Part shown: one piece after another, positions 4,334-57,396 of the stretch
Layout: every line of letters begins with the position of its first letter
Position numbering within the stretch: position 1 is the first letter of the stretch
Sequence record: MW057919.1
DNA length: 64,000 bases
Direction: 5' to 3' (one strand)
The notes under the pieces: generated by a model
Told to the model about the DNA's origin: nothing
Seen by the model: the letters and a program-made list of their open reading frames with translations, nothing else
Databases searched by the model: none
Program-made: the position numbers and the translations under genes

Positions 4334-4397
4334 ATTCAAACATATTTAAACAGTATATTACTAACTTGATATTTAACCTTCAATTAATGTAAAAAGG
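4334..4397 (+). repeat. 64-bp early promoter/5'UTR cassette, copy 2
   Basis: Identical to 2482-2545; TATATTAC at 4354-4361. Confidence 0.95.
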
Positions 4398-4407
4398 GAC
4401 TTTAAAA

Positions 4408-4557
4408 ATGAAAGCATTCGCACTAGTGGTTATTGGTTTGACTTTTGGTGGACTGTTTGTAAACGCTAAGTTTGAAGAGCAAACTATTTCTAATGAAACT
4501 GTTATCCTCGGTCATCGTATCGGTCCCAATGGTCAAGAAATGCTCGTAACTAAATAG
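4408..4557 (+). CDS. Small protein (49 aa) with N-terminal signal/TM segment; not in ORF track
   Basis: Manual translation MKAFALVVIGLTFGGLFVNAKFEEQ...LVTK*, SD AAGGGA, directly behind promoter cassette. Confidence 0.75.
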   Translation: MKAFALVVIGLTFGGLFVNAKFEEQTISNETVILGHRIGPNGQEMLVTK

Positions 4558-4567
4558 AGAAATAAAA

Positions 4568-4909
4568 ATGGAAAAGTCCGTAGCAGTTAAAGTAATCGAC
4601 AACATGTGCCGTCCGAATATCGTTGCTCGCATGAATGGTAAACTGGTCTACCATGCTCGTAACGTAAAAATAGTAGAAGGTAAGGATCTATGGCCGAACC
4701 GCACTGACGTAGATGATGTTCGTGTACTGGTCGGTGAAGCCTTCCGTAACGGTGAATGGGTACCCATGCGCAGTTCTAGCCTGGTTAACGTAGATGCTGT
4801 TACCGGTGTATACGAAACCCTCAACTCTGTTTACATTGCTCCGGATCTTCTGGGAAGTCTCTCGGTGGGTCCTGATATCTTCAATGATGATGCAACTTTG
4901 AAAGGATAA
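4568..4909 (+). CDS. Early hypothetical protein
   Basis: 113-aa ORF in compact early operon. Confidence 0.8.
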   Translation: MEKSVAVKVIDNMCRPNIVARMNGKLVYHARNVKIVEGKDLWPNRTDVDDVRVLVGEAFRNGEWVPMRSSSLVNVDAVTGVYETLNSVYIAPDLLGSLSVGPDIFNDDATLKG

Positions 4910-5480: not shown

Positions 5481-6083
5481 ATGGAACAGCGTCTCCTGAA
5501 AGCTTTCAAGAACATAGATCCCGTGTTCACGCAGAAACAGCACAACGAGTTGATCGATCGACGCGGTGCCGACATGGGTTTGACTGTCAAGGTCGACGCC
5601 ATGCTACTGTTGATCAAGAACGACCCGGTCAAGTACAAAGACCTGGAAACCAAGATCATCGAAGACGCCATCGCCTTCATAAAAGGTGAGCGTTCCTCCG
5701 ATATCGCCCTGGGCCTGTTCAACAAGATGGTTTATCAGGACAACGGTCCCGATGCCGTCGGCCTGCTGGAATACGCCAAGGTTTCCGAGTACAAGAACAT
5801 CCACGTGGATGAGTCCTGTGCTTGGGTCAACGTCTACCGTGGCAAGCTGAAGACCTTCATGGTTACATTCATCTCCCAATGTGCCGGTAACGCTCTGGTA
5901 CGTTCGGAACTGAAGACTCTTCAACATCAGCGTTACAATATCGCTAAGCAGAACTTCCGCGACATGAACAAACCTGTGCCTGAAGGTACTGTGAAAGAAC
6001 TGGCCAAAATGTACGGTAAATCCATCTCGGAAATCCGTCGCATGAAAGCCGAAGGTCGTCTTGGGGAACTGACCCAAGAATAA
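5481..6083 (+). CDS. Early protein with C-terminal HTH-like motif
   Basis: 200 aa; ends TVKELAKMYGKSISEIRRMKAEGRL; SD GAGGA. Confidence 0.8.
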   Translation: MEQRLLKAFKNIDPVFTQKQHNELIDRRGADMGLTVKVDAMLLLIKNDPVKYKDLETKIIEDAIAFIKGERSSDIALGLFNKMVYQDNGPDAVGLLEYAKVSEYKNIHVDESCAWVNVYRGKLKTFMVTFISQCAGNALVRSELKTLQHQRYNIAKQNFRDMNKPVPEGTVKELAKMYGKSISEIRRMKAEGRLGELTQE

Positions 6084-6084
6084 T

Positions 6085-6138
6085 AGATGGGTCTCTTCGG
6101 AGACCCATCTCAATGCGTCTTGAAAAGGATGCATTGAG
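6085..6138 (+). promoter_or_regulatory. Tandem hairpins (UUCG and GAAA loops) upstream of the 370-aa gene
   Basis: AGATGGGTCTC-TTCG-GAGACCCATCT, then CTCAATGCGTCTT-GAAA-AGGATGCATTGAG; no U-tract. Confidence 0.7.
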
Positions 6139-6176
6139 ATGTACTCAACCCAATCAATCGTAAAAAGGAAATTACC

Positions 6177-7289
6177 ATGAAACAGTATCGTGAACCCGTA
6201 ACCCGTCTGACCAAAGAAAAACTGGAATGGGTTATCAGCCGTCGTAAAGAAAGAAAGGCCGAACAACCTTTCGGTCGTGCCCATTTCCCTGCCGGTACTC
6301 GTGCTATCTTCGAATCCTGCTCCCTTCGTTACCTGGATGAGAATGAACGTGTGTATCCTGGACAGCGCTACGAGACATTCGAAGCTACTGTTCTCGGCGT
6401 TGTGGCCAATGGTCATAACAGTTATGTCGCTATTCTGGACATGCCCTGTGATCTTACTGAAAGCCGTAACAAGGCAATCAACGTCAGTTGGTGCCGTGGT
6501 ATTGTATCGCGCGGTGAAGGTAATTTCACCTGGTTCAAAGAAGAGTCAACCGAGTATGATCGCAATCATGGTTGGAACATCCGTGAGAAACATCCGACTG
6601 TTCGTTGGGCAGAAGGTCCTCGTCCTACTAAAGTACGTAGCCTTACCTGGGCAGAGGAATTCGATTATAACCGCGCAGTAGATCCGGTATACATCGAAAT
6701 CAACAAACATCACAGTCAGTACTATATCACTGACATGCGTTCGTTTGTGATGTTCACTCTTCGGGAACATCCTGCTTATGCAAACTCGTTTAAAGATCAT
6801 CTGCACAAACTGGACAAGCTAGTCATGGCGCTGTACTCCGATCCGACTATCAAAGCAGCTGAAGTAAAGCTGTCTCGCTACTCTGTTAGCTGGTTGATCA
6901 GCAAGAAGAAGTTCCATAAAGTCCTGCAACGCCTGCTTCCGTTCTACAAGACTTCTCGTCGTAAGGCGCAAGAAGAAGACGATAAAGCAATTAGCGAGAT
7001 GTATGAGGCTGAACTGGACCGTGACCTCAGTGAACAGTATGGTGAGTCTGATGATACCTCGGATGAATCAAGCTATTCATGGAATGACAGCACGCCCCTG
7101 GATGATGATGATCTGAATGTGTTTGATATGTACGACGACTCGGCATGCTCGCGTGAAATCAGTGATGATGTTCAACCCAAAACTATTGGTGAACTCCTGC
7201 GTGAAGCAATGGGGAACCCTGAAGAAGAGAAATCCAAATTAGTTATTGGAAGTATGGAAACTCTTTCTAAAGCGGTTATCATCAAATAG
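6177..7289 (+). CDS. Early protein, probable phiKZ014-like ribosome-associated factor
   Basis: 370 aa with basic N-terminus and acidic C-terminal tail. Size and gene order match phiKZ gp14 as recalled; not verified by alignment. Confidence 0.55.
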   Translation: MKQYREPVTRLTKEKLEWVISRRKERKAEQPFGRAHFPAGTRAIFESCSLRYLDENERVYPGQRYETFEATVLGVVANGHNSYVAILDMPCDLTESRNKAINVSWCRGIVSRGEGNFTWFKEESTEYDRNHGWNIREKHPTVRWAEGPRPTKVRSLTWAEEFDYNRAVDPVYIEINKHHSQYYITDMRSFVMFTLREHPAYANSFKDHLHKLDKLVMALYSDPTIKAAEVKLSRYSVSWLISKKKFHKVLQRLLPFYKTSRRKAQEEDDKAISEMYEAELDRDLSEQYGESDDTSDESSYSWNDSTPLDDDDLNVFDMYDDSACSREISDDVQPKTIGELLREAMGNPEEEKSKLVIGSMETLSKAVIIK

Positions 7290-8407: not shown

Positions 8408-8887
8408 ATGTCGTATAACCTAGGCATTGTCACTCGCAATAAGTCGGCACTGATTGTCACCAATGATTACAAATATGATGAGTTCGTTCTACTAAAACCG
8501 ACCAGTGGTCTCAAGGTAGAAGGTCAGTTGGTGCAATTGGTCTGTATCTGTTTCGGTGACAAGGAAAAGCGTTCTCTGACTCACAAGATCATGACCAATG
8601 CTGAACAAGCAGATTACACCAAGGAAGACATCCTGGCTATGATGAAGGAACACGGTGTAGAACTTCGAGTGATCACTGATAAGGCAGTTCATGTATTTCA
8701 GTACATTCGTGATGTGGCTATCCATGGTGTGGTTGATTCCAATAACACCACCTTCTGGTTCGGCGACACGGAACACCGAAAATTGTTTTATCCGTATTGC
8801 GGTATTGAAGGTAAATCTTTTCATCATGCCCATCGTGATAAAGAATTGTGTCGGGTATTTGAGTTTGTCGCTGTAATCAATTGGTAA
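8408..8887 (+). CDS. Early hypothetical protein
   Basis: 159-aa ORF, SD GAGGA. Confidence 0.85.
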   Translation: MSYNLGIVTRNKSALIVTNDYKYDEFVLLKPTSGLKVEGQLVQLVCICFGDKEKRSLTHKIMTNAEQADYTKEDILAMMKEHGVELRVITDKAVHVFQYIRDVAIHGVVDSNNTTFWFGDTEHRKLFYPYCGIEGKSFHHAHRDKELCRVFEFVAVINW

Positions 8888-8893
8888 CGATAT

Positions 8894-8924
8894 AAATACC
8901 CTCCTTCGGGAGGGTATTTATTTT
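8894..8924 (+). terminator. Rho-independent terminator
   Basis: AAATACCCTCC-TTCG-GGAGGGTATTT followed by ATTTT. Confidence 0.9.
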
Positions 8925-8943
8925 GTGATTAGAGGAATAAAAA

Positions 8944-9087
8944 ATGGTAGGTTATCGTATTATTGCTTTTAATGGTACTCAGTGGGAATCTCCGAGTGGG
9001 TACACCATTCAGCAAGCGGTGAATGAGTTCCTAAAGAAATATGATTTACATGAATTAGATATTCGCAGTATTACCGCATTACACTAA
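8944..9087 (+). CDS. Small protein (47 aa); not in ORF track
   Basis: Manual translation MVGYRIIAFNGTQWESPSGYTIQQAVNEFLKKYDLHELDIRSITALH*; SD GAGGA. Confidence 0.7.
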   Translation: MVGYRIIAFNGTQWESPSGYTIQQAVNEFLKKYDLHELDIRSITALH

Positions 9088-13066: not shown

Positions 13067-13332
13067 TGGGACTCCGTTACATGGGTTATTCCGTTAAAGC
13101 AACTGTGACTGACCGTGAAGGCGAGTCGCATATCTTTGACGGCTTTGCCAAGCCTGGCGAGGGTAATTCGGTTTATCCCGGAGCTAATGGTGAAGGTGAT
13201 AAGCGTCTTGCAGCTCGCCGCGCACTGGAAGCCTTCATGGATAGTCCAGTCTTCGAGGAACTAACATCGGATATGTACGATACGTTCGATGTTCGTTTCA
13301 ATTCTCTTGTGCACACTGGAATGCCGGAGTAA
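13066..13332 (+). CDS. Hypothetical protein
   Basis: 88-aa ORF, TAATG coupling. Confidence 0.8.
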   Translation: MGLRYMGYSVKATVTDREGESHIFDGFAKPGEGNSVYPGANGEGDKRLAARRALEAFMDSPVFEELTSDMYDTFDVRFNSLVHTGMPE

Positions 13333-13775: not shown

Positions 13776-13937
13776 AAGGAAATCCCCATTGGCCGCTAAA
13801 CCAATGGGGTTCCAAACAGTGCATTCGCGACTACACTGTCAGCAGGTGTCGTCCAAGAGAACTGCGGATTAGCTACTTACCCCTCGTGGGCATTTTCACT
13901 AGCAGTATTATAACAACACCGTACGTTCTGAAAAGAT

Positions 13938-13969
13938 TAGCCCTCCTGTGCAACCAGGAGGGCTATATG
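13938..13969 (+). terminator. Hairpin terminator-like element ending TATG
   Basis: TAGCCCTCCTG/CAGGAGGGCTA stem followed by TATG. Confidence 0.7.
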
Positions 13970-14028
13970 TCGTCAAGTTTAAGCTTGACTTTTTGCCCAA
14001 ATGGGCCCACTTGCAGAGGAGACTCCTA

Positions 14029-14295
14029 ATGAAAGTCTTTGAAACAAGTTCCAGACCAGATCCCCACCACGGGTACTTGACTGGTCTAGAGGTAACAGCA
14101 TTCAATGGTAAGCCGATCGTCTATGGGCGAAATGAGCAAATCAAAGTTGCTGTATACGATGGTAAGATGTTCCTTGGTTACATTGGCAATGGTCAGCTTG
14201 TAAACAAGCTTTCCGATGCTAAATGGATTGACGGATCGTCTAACTATCATATTAATTCTAACTCCAGTAATCTTTTGTTCGCTAGAGTTGCTTAA
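14029..14295 (+). CDS. Hypothetical protein (88 aa)
   Basis: ATG 14029 with SD GAGGAG. The longer 13948 GTG start runs through hairpins and is unlikely. Confidence 0.75.
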   Translation: MKVFETSSRPDPHHGYLTGLEVTAFNGKPIVYGRNEQIKVAVYDGKMFLGYIGNGQLVNKLSDAKWIDGSSNYHINSNSSNLLFARVA

Positions 14296-14299
14296 CTTC

Positions 14300-14348
14300 A
14301 AATACCCTCTTCATTGCGAAGAGGGTAACGTATTATTATTTTTTTTTG
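14300..14348. terminator. Terminator between convergent genes
   Basis: TACCCTCTTC/GAAGAGGGTA stem and long T run between the early region and the terminase gene. Confidence 0.8.
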
Positions 14349-29214: not shown

Positions 29215-29418
29215 ATGGATTTAAATCCTCATGACATCGATAATCAAGCAATATTTAATTATTTAGAAATGCTACCATCTACTTTTAAGATAACTGAATC
29301 TACTTTTGTTGCTGCTGATTTTGATAGTAATGGTGATGTCATCATACAACTAGAGCAATCATTAATTTATACTGGTTGCTCTTTATCTAAATTTAATGCG
29401 TGTTTTAACACTATGTAA
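29215..29418 (+). CDS. Small hypothetical protein
   Basis: 67-aa ORF, SD AGG, followed by hairpin. Confidence 0.6.
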   Translation: MDLNPHDIDNQAIFNYLEMLPSTFKITESTFVAADFDSNGDVIIQLEQSLIYTGCSLSKFNACFNTM

Positions 29419-29425
29419 ATATAAT

Positions 29426-29452
29426 GCCCTCTCCATAAGGAGAGGGCTTATG
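29426..29452 (+). terminator. Hairpin followed by TATG (possible late promoter for the next two genes)
   Basis: GCCCTCTCC-ATAA-GGAGAGGGC-T-TATG. Confidence 0.7.
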
Positions 29453-29504
29453 ATGTATTTTCTCTTTTATCATCTGTAGTACAATAACTCAAATATAATT
29501 GTAG

Positions 29505-41307: not shown

Positions 41308-41691
41308 ATGGAAAAACGAGTATTTATCGTATTTAAATCTAAAGAGTCAGAAATATATTCGCAACATTTGCTTCGTGAATATACAAAACGAATGATATAT
41401 CCAGATTGTCCAACACCACTTGATTTATTTGAAGAATCACGTAAGTTAAGTTATATGGATACGCTTAATAATGACATATATATCCATATGCTGATGTATG
41501 GACATGACTCATTTGATGATCCTGACGAAGATATTGAGTTAGAGAATTATTCTACTAAAGGATATGTTATTGAATATTGTACCGACTTTATCAATAGCTT
41601 TAAAGAAAAATTTCCAAATGGACATGTATTAATTACAGTGCCAATGGATACAAAAGGTCTGTTTGGTGTAGTTGTATTACTAGATGAGTAA
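41308..41691 (+). CDS. Hypothetical protein
   Basis: 127-aa ORF, SD AGGA within a structured leader. Confidence 0.8.
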   Translation: MEKRVFIVFKSKESEIYSQHLLREYTKRMIYPDCPTPLDLFEESRKLSYMDTLNNDIYIHMLMYGHDSFDDPDEDIELENYSTKGYVIEYCTDFINSFKEKFPNGHVLITVPMDTKGLFGVVVLLDE

Positions 41692-41716
41692 TACCCTATG
41701 TAACCAACTATTTTAG

Positions 41717-42142
<426 letters not shown>

Positions 42143-42147
42143 CTATA

Positions 42148-42171
42148 AAGGAGCCATTATGGCTCCTTTTA
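42148..42171 (+). terminator. Rho-independent terminator
   Basis: AAAGGAGCCAT-T-ATGGCTCCTTTT inverted repeat followed by T-rich sequence. Confidence 0.75.
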
Positions 42172-42342
42172 TGTTGTATTATTTTTACTTGCTTACATCA
42201 TCTAATGTGAATGTAAGTTGATGTGCTACCTCTCAATTTAGGGTGCCCGTATAGGGTACCCATTCTTTCCTTTTCTTTTTTAGTTAAAGAGAGAGAAATC
42301 ATTCACTATAATTAAAAATAAGTATACTGAGAGATATGTGAA

Positions 42343-47340: not shown

Positions 47341-47412
47341 TAAATTGAATCTAGTATACTAAGTACTTAGGTTCTTCTTGATCAAGAAACCATAATCGTA
47401 AAGGTATTTAAA

Positions 47413-49293
47413 ATGGCTGTTAACGAAAACGAAATCGGCACCGTTCAAACTCAAGCTACCGCTCCGGCTCCGCAACCCACTACACAGCGTCAAGCTCAAC
47501 GTCCTACTGGCGCGCCTGGGTCTACTACTGGCATTAACCATCTAATGCGTCGCTCTGGTCGGCTAGATGGCTCTGATGCTCGTTCAGCAGATGCCCTACA
47601 AGTATTCACTAAAGTAAAAGAAGAAGCAATCCGCCATCAGGACCTACCTGATGACTTCGATATCCATCGTTTCGATCGCGATGCACAACAAGTGGGTATG
47701 GCTGGTCTACTCATTGTTAAACTAGCTAAAGATATCAATGGTTCCATGAAGGCATTCGTTCGTACTCTAGTACTCGATAACCTACCTGGTACTCGCATCC
47801 GTCCCCGTACCCACAAAATCAACAATGGTCTAACTGATGACATCATTGAAGAGAAGGTACTACCGCGTGATGTATTCACTGCTCAATACTGGAGCAAGAT
47901 CGGCGAGTTCCTACGGAACCGTTACAACATCCCTGGTCTAGAAGTACTATCTGCCGGTCCACGTGCAGTGTATGCTGACTTCGACTTCAAAGATGAACTA
48001 GCTGTTAAGAACCTACTAGTTGAATCCGTTAATATCTGTGAAGATGCTATTGCGCGTCGTAACAATGAGACTCCGTTCTCTATTGCGACCCACATCAAAG
48101 CAGAAAACGAACAGCTTACCTGCAATCTAGACTACAATGGTATTCCGGTTAAAGATAGCTGTGGTAATCCGATCCGTTCTGACCTGGTCATCTCCACTAG
48201 CCGTGGTAAGAAAACCAACGTACCTGAGAACGAGTTCTATGATACCGATAGCCAGCTAAACCAAGTTAGTCTATTCGTAGATCTACATTGGACTCCGACC
48301 ACTGGCCAGCAACAAGGCATGTTTGGCGTAACTCTACCTGGTGCAGTTCTACCTCCGCAGTTCACTCCTTACATCGTTATTACTGACGTTCGTAAGGCGT
48401 CCTGGATCCAAGCATGGACTCTAGAAATGTGGCTGTTCGCGCTTGGTAACGCGTATCGTGCAACTGCATCTCAGGCATGGGCTCGTACTCTAATGCCGAA
48501 GATCGCTACTAGTAAGATGCGTGATATTGGTGCACTTGGTTATTACTCAGAGCTAGGTAAAGCGATTGAAACTCGCACCGAAGCATTCATGGCAGACGAC
48601 AGCAACTTCGTAATGCTAATGAACAAGATGGTTAACCAGAACCCTGCATTCCAGATCGATATCGATCCAATGGGCGACAACTCAGCTATTGAGCAAGTCA
48701 TCCTAGATGCAGCTGGTGGCGTAAACCAAGCTCGTGCAGTTAGCCTGATCTTCCAAGCTCTAACTAACCTATATGGCACTGATTTCCGTCAGTTCTATAA
48801 CCTAGCTGAAGCTGGTCCGATTATCTTTGACAACCATCATGAAGTAGACCTCGGTCACTACACTGATGAGCATGGTGAACTAAGCGACCGTCGTGATCTT
48901 GACGTTCTAGGCGCCATGAACATGTCTGAAGGTAATGATCAAGAGTGGAAGACCTGGTATGCTACTCAAGTAGGTAATGACCACATTGTGCGTCGTATGA
49001 ATAACAGTAAAGGCTTCGACAAGATGTACCTAGGTAACGTTACCTATACTGGTCGTGCTCGTCGTCTAACCTTTAACCCGAAATTCATCACCGCAATGGA
49101 TGCCGCAGCAGCAGCAGCTGGTGTAACTGTAACTATGGAAAACCTAATTACCAACTTCGGTCAACAGCGCTTCGCTGGTTACACCGGTATGGGTAACATG
49201 GCTGTTTCTGGTAGTGCACAAGTTGGTATGGCTGGCAGCATGGGTCAAACTTACGGCGCTCCTTCCTATAATGCACCGGGTACCTGGTACTAA
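47413..49293 (+). CDS. chmA: Chimallin, phage nuclear shell protein (gp54)
   Basis: 626 aa; disordered Q/T/P-rich N-terminus and G/M-rich C-terminal tail ending PGTWY; position immediately before the nvRNAP subunit; strongly biased codons. Confidence 0.93.
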
Positions 49294-49618
49294 TAGGAAA
49301 TACCTCGGTAGATAGGGATGTTAAATAAGTAACATCCCGATTCTAATACTGCGACCCTGTTTCACTTCGGTGATAACGGTTAGGAGTAGGTTCCGTGAAG
49401 TAATCGACTAGTGGACTTAGTCTAGGTCGACCTATCACTACACGAGGATGATAGATCACTTAACCGAAAGGAGTTACTCAAAAGGTGACGTGTGATCAAA
49501 ACTACAATGGATGGTAAAAGGTCCTAGTGCCAGAGCGCTACAGAGAAGAGCGGAGGTTAAGCTTTGTAGACGACGCTAGGATCGGGCCAGGCTCCGTTGG
49601 TGGTCCATTGTAAAAACT
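49294..49618 (+). ncRNA. Candidate large structured non-coding RNA or structured chmA 3'UTR
   Basis: No ORF; at least 8 helices, including perfect 8-9 bp stems, UUCG and GAAA tetraloops and long-range TACAATGGA/TCCATTGTA; closed by a terminator. Confidence 0.7.
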
Positions 49619-49661
49619 GATATAGCGGCTCCTTCGGGGGCCGCTTATATCTCCTTTTTTT
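49619..49661 (+). terminator. Rho-independent terminator
   Basis: GATATA-GCGGCTCC-TTCG-GGGGCCGC-T-TATATC then CTCC and T7. Confidence 0.85.
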
Positions 49662-49686
49662 GTTAATCGATAAATAGGAGTTTGGT

Positions 49687-50823
49687 ATGGGTCTTTATGC
49701 CAAAGTTGTTGATCATGATGAAGTACATGATCAATTTACGGGTAAACGTATTTATGCCAATGATTACAATACGAGTAACTCAGATGAGAAAGAAGAATTT
49801 GATAGGCATTTCTATTCTCATTTCCAAGATTCAGAAGCAATTGAAAGTAGCGTAAGTTGTGATTGTCGAGCAATCGAAGACGCACATAAACTCGGAGTAA
49901 TCTGTGATATTTGTAATACTCCAGTTGTCAATACTTCTAGCCGCCCTATCGAACCATCAATGTGGGTTCGTACACCAAAACATGTACGTAGTCTAATTAA
50001 CCCACGTTTAATCATTATGCTAACTGGATATCTAGTAACTAAAGAATTCGATTTCTTAGCATATCTAACCGATACTTCTTATCGATACGACGTAGAATCC
50101 ATTGCCTCTAAAGAAACACGCAGGAAAGTAGATAGGCTACTGCATCGAGGATTTGAAAGAGGATTAAATCACTTCATTGATAACTTCAATGAGATCTTCC
50201 AATTCCTACTAGATGCAAATATTATCTCTAATAATAAATCCGAATTCGCTCAATTCATTGCTCAGAATAAAGATAAGCTATTCCCTAAATATTTACCAGT
50301 TCCTTCTAAACTCTGTTTCGTAGCAGAATCAACTACATCTGGTACTTACTTAGATAAACCAATTGAAGCAGCAATTGACGCTACCTTAACCTTCGCTAGT
50401 ATTGATGCATCGTCTGTACCACTTAGCCCTATTAAAGCTCAGAATAGGACTATGCGAGGACTAAGACTATATGGCCAGTTCTACGAGATCTACGCAAAAT
50501 CACGAATTGCTCAAAAGCCTGGTCTTGCTCGGCGTCACATGTTTGGTGCTCGTCTCAACGCTACGGCACGTGCAGTAATCACTTCTATTAGTGACCCGCA
50601 TGATTATGATGAATTACATATCCCTTGGGGAGTAGGTTGTCAATTATTAAAGTATCATCTAACTAACAAGTTAAAAGCTAAGTTTAACATGACAACTCGT
50701 GAAGCATTCTCATTTGTATATGAGAATGTACTTCAATATAACCAAATCATCGCTGATCTATTTAAAGAGTTAATTGCAGAGGCCGCACCATATAAAGGAA
50801 TGGGTTGCACTTTTCACCGAAAT
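49687..50823 (+). CDS. nvRNAP beta-prime-type subunit (gp55-like), exon 1 (379 aa)
   Basis: Zn ribbon CDC...CDIC, RHMFGARL..TARAVI, ends ...FHRN at the splice site. Confidence 0.9.
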
Positions 50824-51128
50824 TAATTTGTATATTAATACTAAATGGTTTCCTTGTAATAGAAATATTACTCGACAAAACTCCTTTAATTGCTGGGACA
50901 TCTCAATGAGACAATCAGCAGCGAAGCTTTCCAGAAATGGATTGAACGTTCAACGACTATCGAAAGGCACGAAAGTGAACCGAGTAGAGTAGAGTCAAGT
51001 GACTCGAAATGGGGAGCACCTTACTGGGTAATGCCAAAGGTGAAGATATAGTCTGGTCTGCATGGTGACATGCAGCTGTCTATTATTAATAGACGGGATA
51101 AGCTTAACGAACTTATCTGAACACAACG
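50824..51128 (+). mobile_element. Group I intron 1 (305 nt, no ORF)
   Basis: Exon ends in U and intron ends in G. P AATTGCTGGGA 50888, Q AATCAGCAGC 50913, R GTTCAACGACTA 50948, S GAAGATATAGTC 51042; P1 with U-G wobble (IGS GGTTTC). Removal restores RN|PTLQRG in frame. Confidence 0.92.
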
Positions 51129-51236
51129 CCGACCCTTCAACGTGGATCTACTCAACAATTCTTTATTACTAAAGTAAAAGATGACATTAATGATAATTCA
51201 ATCAGCATGTCAGTATTATGCCTTAAAGCGCCTAAT
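51129..51236 (+). CDS. nvRNAP subunit exon 2 (108 nt, 36 aa); not in ORF track
   Basis: PTLQRGSTQQFFITKVKDDINDNSISMSVLCLKAPN, the conserved segment between the NRxPTL-like motif and NADFDGD. Confidence 0.92.
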
Positions 51237-51733
51237 GGACAACTAACTAACTAAATAAGGTAAAAACAATGGAACAAAACGGAGTAGTGTCCGTCTTTGA
51301 TCCGGCTTCATTTAAAATTGAATATGAAGTGCTTGATAAATACCTTATTAAGTTAATCAAGTCTAGTTCCCCCAGTGAGTAATCATTGGGGTGAGTTCTC
51401 TCTAATTGCTGGGATATCCTGTTAAACTAATCTACCACTGCGAGTCGAAAGACAAAGCCAAGGTTTGAAAAAGATTAGGTAGGGCCAATCAGCAGCCAAG
51501 CTCCGTAACATTCCATTTAGGAATAGGAGAAGGTTCAACGACTATTACGGTATCAGGTGCACCGGTCCTAGAAATAGGATGTAGGGTCAAGTGGCTCGAA
51601 ATGGGAGACACCCCACTCCGAAAGGAAGGGTGAAGATATAGTCTGGTCTGCATGGTGACATGCAGCAGGTGGTAATTATCATGTGGTAATTATACTACCG
51701 GGTATGGATTAACGACCCATACTGAACATAACG
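51237..51733 (+). mobile_element. Group I intron 2 (497 nt) inside the catalytic NADFDGD motif
   Basis: P 51404, Q 51487, R 51533, S 51632 elements; ends GAACATAACG. Removal gives N|ADFDGDQLN in frame. Confidence 0.92.
51269..51382 (+). pseudogene. 37-aa mini-ORF in intron 2, possible homing endonuclease remnant
   Basis: SD AAGGT + ATG; MEQNGVVSVFDPASFKIEYEVLDKYLIKLIKSSSPSE*; lies 5' of the catalytic core. Confidence 0.45.
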
Positions 51734-51952
51734 GCGGATTTTGACGGCGATCAATTGAATTTAACGTTAATGCCTGATGTGTATTTAACTAAAGCAACTG
51801 AACGCATTGCTCCACATACATGGGTTCTATCTATTGATGAACCACATGAAATCTCAGGTAACCTTGAATTACAGGGTCCTGTTGTAGAAACGATTATTAA
51901 TTGGGCGCATGAGAAGTATTTACCACCATTAGAAGAGTGGTTGAAGTCGTAA
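51734..51952 (+). CDS. nvRNAP subunit exon 3 (72 aa; gp56.1-like)
   Basis: GCG GAT TTT GAC GGC GAT = ADFDGD, in frame with track ORF 51755-51952; spliced product 487 aa. Confidence 0.92.
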   Translation, partial: ADFDGDQLNLTLMPDVYLTKATERIAPHTWVLSIDEPHEISGNLELQGPVVETIINWAHEKYLPPLEEWLKS

Positions 51953-56267: not shown

Positions 56268-57396
56268 TAAAACAAAGAAACCTGGCATATTTCGATATTT
56301 AACAGTAGGCGATGTCCATATGGGGCATCGCCAAACCCCTACTGAATTAATCATCAATAACTTTTGGAAAACTGTCCCTGATACAATTTTAAAAGATATT
56401 GATATGTTGATTATTACAGGGGATTTATTTGATCGTCAATTAAATAATGGCGATCCAGCTGCATACGCAATTGATAGATTTATTACAATACTTCTCTATA
56501 AATGTGAAATGTATAATGTAATGATCCGTATTGTTGAAGGGACCCCATCACATGATCGTGGGCAAATGCAGTTTTTCGTAGAACAAAAGAATAATGCTAA
56601 TATTAAAGTTGATTTGCATTATTCAAAGATTCTCGATATCGAGTATATTGAGAAACTAGATGCATATTTCCTTTATGTCCCTGATAAATGGAATCCATCC
56701 ACATCAGAGACTTTAAATCAAGTAAAAGATTTAATGCATAAGAAAGGTATATCTCAAGTTGACTTCACTATTTTACATGGTGCATTTAAACACCAGCTAC
56801 CAAGTATTGTTGAAGAGCCAACACATGATCCAGATGAATATTTAGCATTAACTAAATATATGATCAATGGTGGACATGTTCATGAGATGTCTATCTATGA
56901 ACGCATTTTAGCTGCCGGTGGATTTGACCGATTAAGTCACAACGACGAAATTCCAAAAGGATTATTTGATGTTGTGGTAAAAGAAAATGGCGAATGGACC
57001 GCTACATTTCTTGAGAATAAGGGTGCGCGTAGATACGATACTTTGAATGTCCATGGAATGGATACTAAGCAACTTAATTACACTGTTAAAGAACACATCA
57101 AGACATTACCAGCTAACTCTGCAATTAGGTTAAGATGTAATCCAGGTGATGTAGCTACTGGTGATCTCGATACATTTCAAAATGAATATCCTAATTTTTC
57201 ATGGAGTATCTTAATTGAAAAAGTTACTACAAAGAAAAATACTGTGTCAGATAGCCTAAAGAATTTTGATTTATCAGAATTTTTGGATATAACTCCAGAA
57301 AGTATTTCTGATTTAATTATTCCAGATATTGAAAAATTTACAGCGGACGCTGCTCAGATCCAACGGGTATTGGGATTATTGACAGAGTTCAAATAA
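56260..57396 (+). CDS. sbcD: SbcD/Mre11-like metallophosphoesterase nuclease
   Basis: Motifs GDVHMGH, ITGDLFD, EGTPSHD, ILHGAF, GGHVH. Confidence 0.88.
   Translation, partial: KTDKTKKPGIFRYLTVGDVHMGHRQTPTELIINNFWKTVPDTILKDIDMLIITGDLFDRQLNNGDPAAYAIDRFITILLYKCEMYNVMIRIVEGTPSHDRGQMQFFVEQKNNANIKVDLHYSKILDIEYIEKLDAYFLYVPDKWNPSTSETLNQVKDLMHKKGISQVDFTILHGAFKHQLPSIVEEPTHDPDEYLALTKYMINGGHVHEMSIYERILAAGGFDRLSHNDEIPKGLFDVVVKENGEWTATFLENKGARRYDTLNVHGMDTKQLNYTVKEHIKTLPANSAIRLRCNPGDVATGDLDTFQNEYPNFSWSILIEKVTTKKNTVSDSLKNFDLSEFLDITPESISDLIIPDIEKFTADAAQIQRVLGLLTEFK

Follow-up and report, generated by a model that had tools for sequence, protein, structure and literature searches.

GOLLD and ROOL are large, ornate RNAs associated with phages and prophages, of unknown function and each with its own Rfam family, and in the retroregulation of lambda int the sib element is a single RNase III hairpin. 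Another kind of phage non-coding RNA (ncRNA) derives from the 3' untranslated region (UTR) of a message, as do ncRNA1 and ncRNA2 of PAK_P3 and the phiKZ RNA beside PHIKZ298 (PMC10914365, PMC8545117), which are about 90-210 nt long, consist of two or three hairpins and were detected experimentally. Here we describe an RNA encoded in a stretch of 64,000 nucleotides (the window), at positions 49294-49661 of the + strand, between chmA, the gene for chimallin, and the first gene of the non-virion RNA polymerase (nvRNAP). By blastn the interval agrees at 100%, at identical coordinates, with Pseudomonas phage vB_PaeM_kmuB (kmuB; MW057919.1), itself a phiKZ-like phage, and its identity to phiKZ and to some 50 records of the phiKZ-like group is 96-99%. 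It very probably encodes a genuine + strand non-coding structured RNA that forms the chmA 3' UTR, as a modular accessory cassette exchanged among P. aeruginosa phages of the phiKZ, PA1C and PhiPA3 types.

Of the known kinds of RNA, phage ncRNAs that derive from 3' UTRs come closest. Like the RNAs of PAK_P3 and PHIKZ298, the chmA 3' UTR RNA would have no transcription start site (TSS) of its own, follows a gene with high expression, has an intrinsic terminator at its predicted end and shows conservation within a genus; on sequence grounds it lacks its own promoter and uses the terminator of the upstream gene. In contrast to them, it is about 330 nt long plus the terminator, is built of three multi-helix modules with a mosaic distribution across genera, and is predicted from sequence. 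With GOLLD and ROOL it shares a length of several hundred nt, many helices, conserved junctions and a phage context, but it matches neither in sequence or structure, has a much narrower distribution and belongs to an mRNA 3' UTR rather than to a free-standing gene near tRNAs. The likeness to sib is that of a structured element 3' of a two-promoter gene and beside a terminator, where the fate of the message could depend on the transcript end; the present RNA is, however, far more complex, and nothing shows RNase III processing. Group I introns are comparable in size range, multi-helix character, horizontal transfer between phiKZ and PhiPA3 phages during co-infection, and the P4-P6-like three-helix look of the 3' module (module C below), but the RNA lies outside coding sequence and gives no Intron_gpI match at E<10, compared with 78-89 bits for the true introns 1.2-2 kb downstream. 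A group I intron remnant was rejected (no RF00028 match at E<10 and no similarity to the neighbouring introns); chmA itself is complete, with its stop codon at the position found in relatives without the RNA.

We found no description of the RNA in the phiKZ dRNA-seq, Grad-seq, ONT-cappable-seq, antisense oligonucleotide (ASO) and Tn-seq papers, the 201phi2-1 transcriptome, the PhiPA3 ChmC eCLIP study and a 2026 jumbo-phage review. Among the 4227 models of Rfam 15, none matched 49294-49661 at gathering score; under permissive filters the best matches had E >=1.1 with scores far under threshold, and in 8 relatives the corresponding spacers, whether homologous or analogous, gave none. A preliminary description of the locus, made from its sequence, had recognised no tRNA, tmRNA, RNase P, SRP or group I motif in it and had proposed an Infernal search against Rfam; that search matched no described family at gathering score or at E<1, and ARAGORN found no tRNA or tmRNA genes across the 64-kb window.

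Pairing conservation and architecture

On comparative evidence this is a real, conserved structured RNA, as judged by compensatory pair changes above controls. Pairing was tested in alignments of distinct variants from phiKZ-like and PA1C-like phages against a structure that we specified, with the partners slid by 1-3 columns as the control. Standard pairs filled 97.0% of cells in the 5' domain and 98.6% in the middle and 3' part, compared with 30-47% in the slid controls, and the observed covariation score was reached by 0 of 500 shuffles. Seven pairs had both sides changed, in helices Ha, Hb, H1 and H3, the inner stem of module B, P-a and P-b. The module B inner stem changes from A-U to G-C in HPP-Temi, pair 49506/49609 likewise changes from A-U to G-C, and at pair 49522/49581 U-A, G-C and G-U are all seen among phiKZ-like phages. 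The large, multi-domain + strand RNA that the preliminary description had proposed directly after chmA is in this way borne out by both pairing conservation and covariation. Its parts are as follows.

49294-49302, + strand: linker after the stop codons, A/U-rich and unpaired (alignments; about 10 nt here and about 25 nt in PhiPA3, its length depending on the lineage)
49303-49447, + strand: module A, a four-way junction of a closing helix and three arms (minimum free energy (MFE) fold; 48 pairs, 97% of cells paired, 4 double-sided changes)
49303-07/49443-47, + strand: closing helix Ha of module A (CCUCG/CGAGG), covarying
49309-12/49342-45 (Hb) and 49315-23/49330-38 (H1), + strand: arm 1 of module A (MFE fold and alignment)
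49349-52/49386-89 and 49357-65/49370-79, + strand: arm 2 (H2) of module A, with a UUCG loop (MFE fold and alignment)
49395-400/49432-38, 49404-09/49425-30 and 49412-16/49420-24, + strand: arm 3 (H3) of module A (MFE fold and alignment)
49454-49497, + strand: module B, a hairpin with outer stem GAUCAC/GUGAUC, an internal loop UUAA with a C-C(GAAA)G-G mini-stem, and inner stem GUUACU/GGUGAC
49503-49612, + strand: module C, a branched 3' domain (MFE fold and alignment) of phiKZ-like, PA1C-like and phiHQ phages
49503-11/49604-12, + strand: P-a of module C, 9 bp, with a 15-bp alternative pairing 49501-15 with 49586-604
49520-29/49574-83, + strand: P-b of module C (alignment)
49536-45/49562-72, + strand: P-c of module C, whose 16-nt loop includes GGAGGUUAAG
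49584-95, + strand: small arm of module C (fold)

The junctions of module A (GAU, AUA, GUUCC and UACA) are conserved, and PhiPA3 retains them while altering the stems. Judged by eye, its H1 reads GGGGUGUACG/CGUACAUCCC, with compensatory changes; its H2 arm is wholly resubstituted, with UUAGGC-CUC-GAAA-GAG-GCCUAG replacing CUGUU-UCAC-UUCG-GUGA-AACGG; and the outer stem of its module B is AACCAC/GUGGUU instead of GAUCAC/GUGAUC, two compensatory changes. In a rough hand alignment, identity between kmuB and PhiPA3 is 85% in junctions, 71% in stems and 20% in terminal loops. Module B is the sole module found in all four lineages (phiKZ, PA1C, phiHQ and PhiPA3), and its internal loop CUUAACC-GAAA-GG is the best-conserved stretch of the whole RNA.

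Many of the pair changes pass via G-U, and there are also C-to-U double changes, such as 49536/49572 with 49537/49571. Since the opposite strand would have A-C mismatches at these pairs, it is the + strand that functions, as RNA, and the earlier argument from G-U pairs for function as RNA has held. Among phiKZ-like phages the changes include a hypervariable patch at 49516-49537 and 49571-49581, located in stem P-b and the P-b/P-c junction, with the alleles AAAAGGUCC..CCAGAGCG in kmuB, U1B and PA7, AAAUGAGAC..CCGGUAUG in phiKZ and KEN49, and ..CCAAUGUG in FBPa36. Pairing in the patch is maintained through U-A, G-C and G-U, and the kmuB allele is of the PA1C type.

Most of the individual helices named from the sequence alone are present, namely those at 49315-38, the UUCG arm (about 49349-89), 49404-30 and 49454-97, the helices GUCCUAGUG/CGCUAGGAU and CUACAGAG/CUUUGUAG, and the UUCG terminator with its U7. 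A CTATCA/TGATAG helix (49432-54) gained no support from the comparison, as it competes with the covarying GUGA/UCAC and CCUCG/CGAGG and has 1-2 mismatches in PA1C and HPP-Temi. The CGGGC/GCUCCG arm has one pair that is broken in 4 of 10 sequences. The 9-bp closing of module C gained one compensatory A-U to G-C change, but the 15-bp alternative is the MFE choice, and the two mutually exclusive closings fit all relatives equally well; a switch between them is possible. Within the RNA there is also a candidate 7-bp loop-loop pairing between GGUUAAG (49555-61) and CUUAACC (49459-65), at -8.5 kcal/mol, which is invariant in the phiKZ, PA1C and phiHQ lineages and not preserved in PhiPA3; this putative tertiary contact is only a lead. 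GGCUCC occurs both in module C and in the 5' strand of the terminator. A long-range duplex of the RNA with the chmA 5' UTR was no better than shuffles, and the result for the ribosome-binding site (RBS) of gp55 cannot be interpreted, as it comes mostly from the tail of the terminator.

The comparative evidence is a stronger line than the folding energy. The + strand folds at -130.9 kcal/mol (z = -5.3), 0 of 100 dinucleotide shuffles being as low, and the - strand has z = -3.4. In a control scan of 200-nt segments over the whole 64-kb stretch, the background z had a mean of -1.1 (standard deviation 1.4) and the segments over the RNA scored -4.4, -3.6 and -5.1, about the top 3% and not the most extreme locus. 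Thermodynamics is suggestive only and by itself would not single out the RNA. Other 200-nt segments with equal or lower z (-5.4 to -7.4) lie at 6001-6300, 56301-56500, 13101-13300, 13801-14300, 8801-9000, 29301-29500 and 42001-42300; of these, 42101-42300 shares part of its length with a gap of 200 nt between annotated genes (42143-42342). None of these other low-z segments has an Rfam match at gathering score.

As the preliminary description had it, the interval of about 370 nt between chmA and the nvRNAP gene is free of open reading frames (ORFs): none exceeds 38 amino acids, and the longest, of that length, is on the minus strand. The indels that distinguish relatives are of 1-2 nt and not multiples of three, so the interval does not look like a small protein gene. 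Small 'hypothetical protein' coding sequences are annotated within the RNA in KEN49 (110-226 and 286-381 of locus L021), HPP-Temi (43-150 and 296-484 of locus L023), ANB1 and others. They lie on either strand at inconsistent positions, and those of KEN49 and HPP-Temi are not common to the records; they are probably gene-caller artefacts.

Distribution and exchange of the modules

A blastn search of 50,697 phage records found the RNA only in P. aeruginosa jumbo phages of the phiKZ, PA1C and PhiPA3 types, with 96-100% identity in phiKZ-like phages, about 87% in PA1C, PS119XW, BRkr and HPP-Temi, the 3' 57% only in phiHQ, and patches in PhiPA3. The corresponding intervals are 47529-47897 of phiKZ and 41455-41969 of PhiPA3. 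There was no second copy in the window or at other positions of the phage records, and no direct repeats were found in the gap. The RNA is richer in GC than its surroundings (46% compared with 38% for the window). Between kmuB and PA1C, identity is 83% in module A, 89% in module B and 96% in module C, whereas the 400-nt flanks are 59% (chmA) and 55% (gp55) identical and the ChmA proteins 48%; in these alignments the RNA is a conservation island. Module C of kmuB is 96% identical to that of PA1C but only 89% to that of phiKZ, whose flanks are 98% identical to kmuB, and in the hot segment 49516-37 the values are 95% to PA1C and 64% to phiKZ. This incongruence points to recombination within the RNA between the Phikzvirus and Pawinskivirus lineages.

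The other lineages differ in the modules they carry. A covariance model of module A, the 5' domain (R1), matched PhiPA3 at 37.5 bits (E 5e-11) and nothing else. In PhiPA3, modules A and B are followed by an unrelated 3' module, about 100 nt long, and then by the terminator, and arm H3 is larger by about 130 nt. Within this H3 expansion (2600-2731 of locus L001) a stretch GCUUAUCUACGUUGUGGGGUAGGUU resembles the module A junction CUAUCACUACACGAG..GUAGGUU, and R1 was mis-anchored there; the resemblance suggests a partial internal duplication. The 3' region of PhiPA3 was considered as a diverged module C and rejected, the model of the 3' domain (R2) giving <=6 bits with filters off. In phiHQ, module A is missing, and a structured stretch of about 300 nt stands in its place, followed by B, C and the terminator. 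The spacer between chmA and the nvRNAP gene in Psa21 is a clear homologue of that stretch, with helix changes such as CCCAG/CUGGG to CUCGA/UCGAG. The module shared by Psa21 (L006 4256-4600) and phiHQ (L003 1194-1500), with z of -3.0 and -5.9, is unrelated to the kmuB RNA and occupies the same site downstream of chmA. A minus-strand ORF of Psa21, gp057 (4341-4583 of the locus), lies over this module, probably a second RNA of such a kind, and is likely to have been annotated in error.

In D6 and Noxifer the spacer is 84-87 nt long and holds the terminator only, while 201phi2-1, Phabio and Viktualia have other structured sequence and small ORFs at the site. ORFs there in other phages gave no PHROG match and one sub-threshold Pfam match only. 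In the loci of Psa21, 201phi2-1, D6, Phabio, Viktualia and Noxifer and in the rest of the window, nhmmer, R1 and R2 returned only the terminator, and that weakly. The chmA 3' UTRs of Phabio (L009 4253-4536; z -5.4) and 201phi2-1 (L007 4259-4483; z -6.3) both start GUUGUAAC..GGGAUCGAAAGGUCCCA and are strongly structured. Neither matches Rfam or resembles the phiKZ RNA, and the two may be a third family at the same hotspot. Scanned for a 20-base motif of module B, IMG/VR yielded PhiPA3 and PA7, metagenomes yielded a single AT-rich hairpin that is unrelated, and 185,579 genomes yielded no match. Over 120 matches in genomes were obtained for a 17-mer of module A; this is the chance expectation, R1 rejected all of them, and the candidates were discarded.

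Read from these alignments, the chmA 3' UTR is a hotspot at which structured RNA modules are traded between genera, and the modules have been inserted behind the stop codon of chmA and ahead of an ancestral terminator, with a cargo that differs per lineage. We have high confidence, from the mosaic, that the cassette comprises at least three independently folded and independently exchangeable modules, A, B and C. The preliminary description had regarded the RNA as the best candidate at this locus for an undescribed component of the phage nucleus. Across the chimallin phages it is not a core component of the Chimalliviridae: D6 and Noxifer have only the terminator, PhiPA3 is without the 3' domain and phiHQ without the 5' domain, and in Psa21, 201phi2-1, Phabio and Viktualia the RNA was undetected and the site holds unrelated sequence. 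Because this distribution is too patchy and modular, we conclude with high confidence from the comparison that the RNA is an undescribed accessory RNA rather than a universal or core part of the nucleus.

Transcription and possible roles

The features flanking the RNA bear on how it would be transcribed, and are the following.

47413-49293, + strand: chmA, for chimallin, the nuclear shell protein (Pfam PF25677, E=0; annotated coding sequence in MW057919.1), the RNA being the predicted 3' UTR of its transcript
49619-49661, + strand: terminator-like hairpin GAUAU-AGCGGCUCC UUCG GGGGCCGCU-UAUAUC, then UCC and U7 (fold and alignment)
49675-50826, + strand: RBS (AGGAG) and first exon of the gp55 homologue, the nvRNAP beta' N-terminal subunit (ORF 49687-50826; record annotation)

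The gap between the end of chmA (49293) and the start of gp55 (49687) is 393 nt. Two group I introns split the nvRNAP beta' N-terminal gene further downstream, at 50826-51075 and 51345-51665 (context 50827-51770; RF00028 at 88.9 and 78.2 bits), and in relatives such as PA1C and PhiPA3 the alignment runs from 50780 to 51124 with the first insert missing. Only a 'truncated HNH homing endonuclease' is annotated in the kmuB record, at 51269-51382, where phiKZ has the intact HNH gene gp56.

The terminator is common to all Pseudomonas chimalliviruses checked and, since relatives without the RNA still carry it, is ancestral; the weak nhmmer matches in D6, Viktualia, 201phi2-1, Psa21 and Phabio are confined to it. 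A simple terminator scan missed the hairpin at 49619-49661, which has three bases between the stem and the U run. The region upstream of chmA has TTATATTAC, which we take to fit the phiKZ early-promoter core. Both early and middle TSSs have been mapped for PHIKZ054 (chmA) in phiKZ (PMC8244752). No TATATTAC-like motif, resembling the phiKZ early promoter, occurs on the + strand over 47341-50855, and sigma-70-like matches are at background level only. With no promoter motif in or after it, the RNA is read most simply as the 3' UTR of the chmA message, which would end at 49619-49661, in keeping with the earlier suggestion that it has no visible separate promoter and is probably either the 3' end of the chmA mRNA or a product of its processing. 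As there is no promoter motif after the terminator and the distance from it to the gp55 start is 26 nt, we infer that gp55 depends on read-through from a transcript on which the RNA is carried with chmA.

A tentative but plausible account of function, and the one that we favour, is that of an early, abundant protein-binding or decoy RNA. The RNA would be produced together with chmA, from both the early and the middle promoters of that gene, and would be abundant from the first minutes of infection; most transcripts would end at 49619-49661, the leak supplying the nvRNAP gene. A defined three-dimensional fold would present docking surfaces, as suggested by stems that covary while the junctions and the internal loop of module B are nearly constant. 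The RNA would then act as an 'RNA moron': it would be accessory, and would bind or titrate a protein of the host or of the phage, whether still attached to the mRNA or already cut away. All four elements of this account, transcription along with chmA, abundance, termination of part of the transcripts and a protein partner, are inferred. Several points weigh against it. The phylogeny is shallow (three or four lineages, with few independent substitution events). The covariation check that had been proposed yielded its seven double-sided pair changes, but from few independent lineages and for an RNA restricted to P. aeruginosa phages; judged from the alignments the covariation is real but thin, and the high identity could partly reflect recent transfer instead of constraint. 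Published phiKZ ncRNA surveys, supplementary tables aside, do not list the interval. No candidate partner was identified: Rsm/GGA and Hfq A-rich sponges and a Shine-Dalgarno (SD) mimic were considered and rejected, as by eye the GGA, A-rich and SD-like motifs of kmuB are not kept in PhiPA3 and are no more frequent than expected. Finally, equally structured but unrelated sequences follow chmA in Psa21 (z -3.0), Phabio (-5.4) and 201phi2-1 (-6.3), and such spacers fit a generic cis role at least as well as they fit specific trans-acting RNAs.

That cis role, the main rival, is possible, if rather doubtful. A 3' UTR element could shield the abundant chmA message from 3'-to-5' decay and endonucleases and may set the stop rate at the terminator, fixing the ratio of ChmA to nvRNAP, or could separate early from middle transcripts by retroregulation in the manner of lambda sib. 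Its position between stop codon and terminator fits, as do a gp55 without a visible promoter of its own, the two mutually exclusive closings of module C that fit all sequences, and the GGCUCC shared by module C and the terminator. Moreover, in 7 of the 10 lineages of Pseudomonas chimalliviruses examined, chmA is followed directly by strongly structured RNA of at least 160 nt, unrelated from one lineage to another, a recurrence which suggests that structure itself is selected. Yet D6 and Noxifer do with the terminator alone, a terminator hairpin is normally enough for 3' protection, and no antiterminator pairing is conserved in PhiPA3; conserved junctions and the intact transfer of modules across genera point to a specific fold, not a generic one. 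The same two patterns, the identity of stems relative to junctions and the transfer of whole modules, are what lead us to favour specific folds with docking surfaces. It is less probable that the region is a riboswitch-like leader of the nvRNAP gene, in which folded domains would sense a ligand or protein and toggle the terminator. A complex fold followed by terminator, RBS and gene is the classic layout, and module C offers alternative pairings; we consider it quite unlikely all the same, given that no riboswitch family matches, that no competition between terminator and antiterminator is conserved, and that whole modules are replaced in PhiPA3 and phiHQ while terminator and gene are unchanged.

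The mosaic content, lineage-specific cargo, cross-genus exchange and GC-rich island could also be read as selfish or neutral insertions, the modules being remnants of mobile or recombinogenic structured elements in a permissive hotspot behind chmA, of no benefit to the phage; the two group I introns and the truncated HNH gene of the adjacent nvRNAP gene indicate that mobile elements are active nearby. This is unlikely, though less so than the leader, as the stems are kept by compensatory and wobble changes, PhiPA3 and phiKZ have conserved junctions in common although their ChmA proteins diverge by about 50%, no second copy exists in the window or elsewhere in the phage records, and no intron, ribozyme or transposon signature was found. 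A new ribozyme, self-cleaving or otherwise catalytic and processing the chmA-gp55 transcript, would be in keeping with the size, the multi-helix junctions, the conserved unpaired nucleotides and the possible 7-bp GGUUAAG/CUUAACC pairing, but appears very unlikely, for the modules are separable, no ribozyme family matches, and the candidate tertiary pairing, invariant in the phiKZ, PA1C and phiHQ lineages, is not kept in PhiPA3. We would put at the same low level a dedicated RNA of the nucleus system, serving as a localisation signal of chmA mRNA, a ligand of ChmC or a scaffold of the shell. The RNA adjoins chmA, and ChmC binds phage RNA; however, it does so with little sequence specificity, and in the PhiPA3 ChmC eCLIP, whose authors inspected the chmA locus, binding was reported at the chmA 5' end only (PMC11077065). 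The RNA is, besides, absent or replaced in most chimalliviruses, including close Pseudomonas relatives.

Significance for nucleus-forming phages

Among phages that form a nucleus, phiKZ serves as the model, and of its early genes chmA is the one studied most and expressed most strongly. An RNA of about 330 nt, supported by covariation, would ride on the chmA transcript, and we found no earlier mention of it. It would be a tractable and informative target, since Cas13-assisted engineering, ASO knock-down, Grad-seq and long-read transcriptomes are available for this system. For annotation, the consequence is that several GenBank records place small 'hypothetical proteins' inside an RNA.

In its boldest form, which we regard as improbable though worth stating, the protein-binding reading would make modules A-C a new class of early, highly expressed trans-acting phage RNAs. 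They would form a compact particle that captures a phage protein or a host protein of defence or RNA metabolism, and would pass between co-infecting jumbo phages as RNA equivalents of anti-defence genes, with the module of Psa21 and phiHQ, the Phabio UTR and that of 201phi2-1 as further members. If the RNA is cis-acting, it would explain how the ratio of ChmA to nvRNAP and the stability of the message are set; if it is trans-acting, these phages would possess accessory RNAs that behave like phage morons or anti-defence genes.

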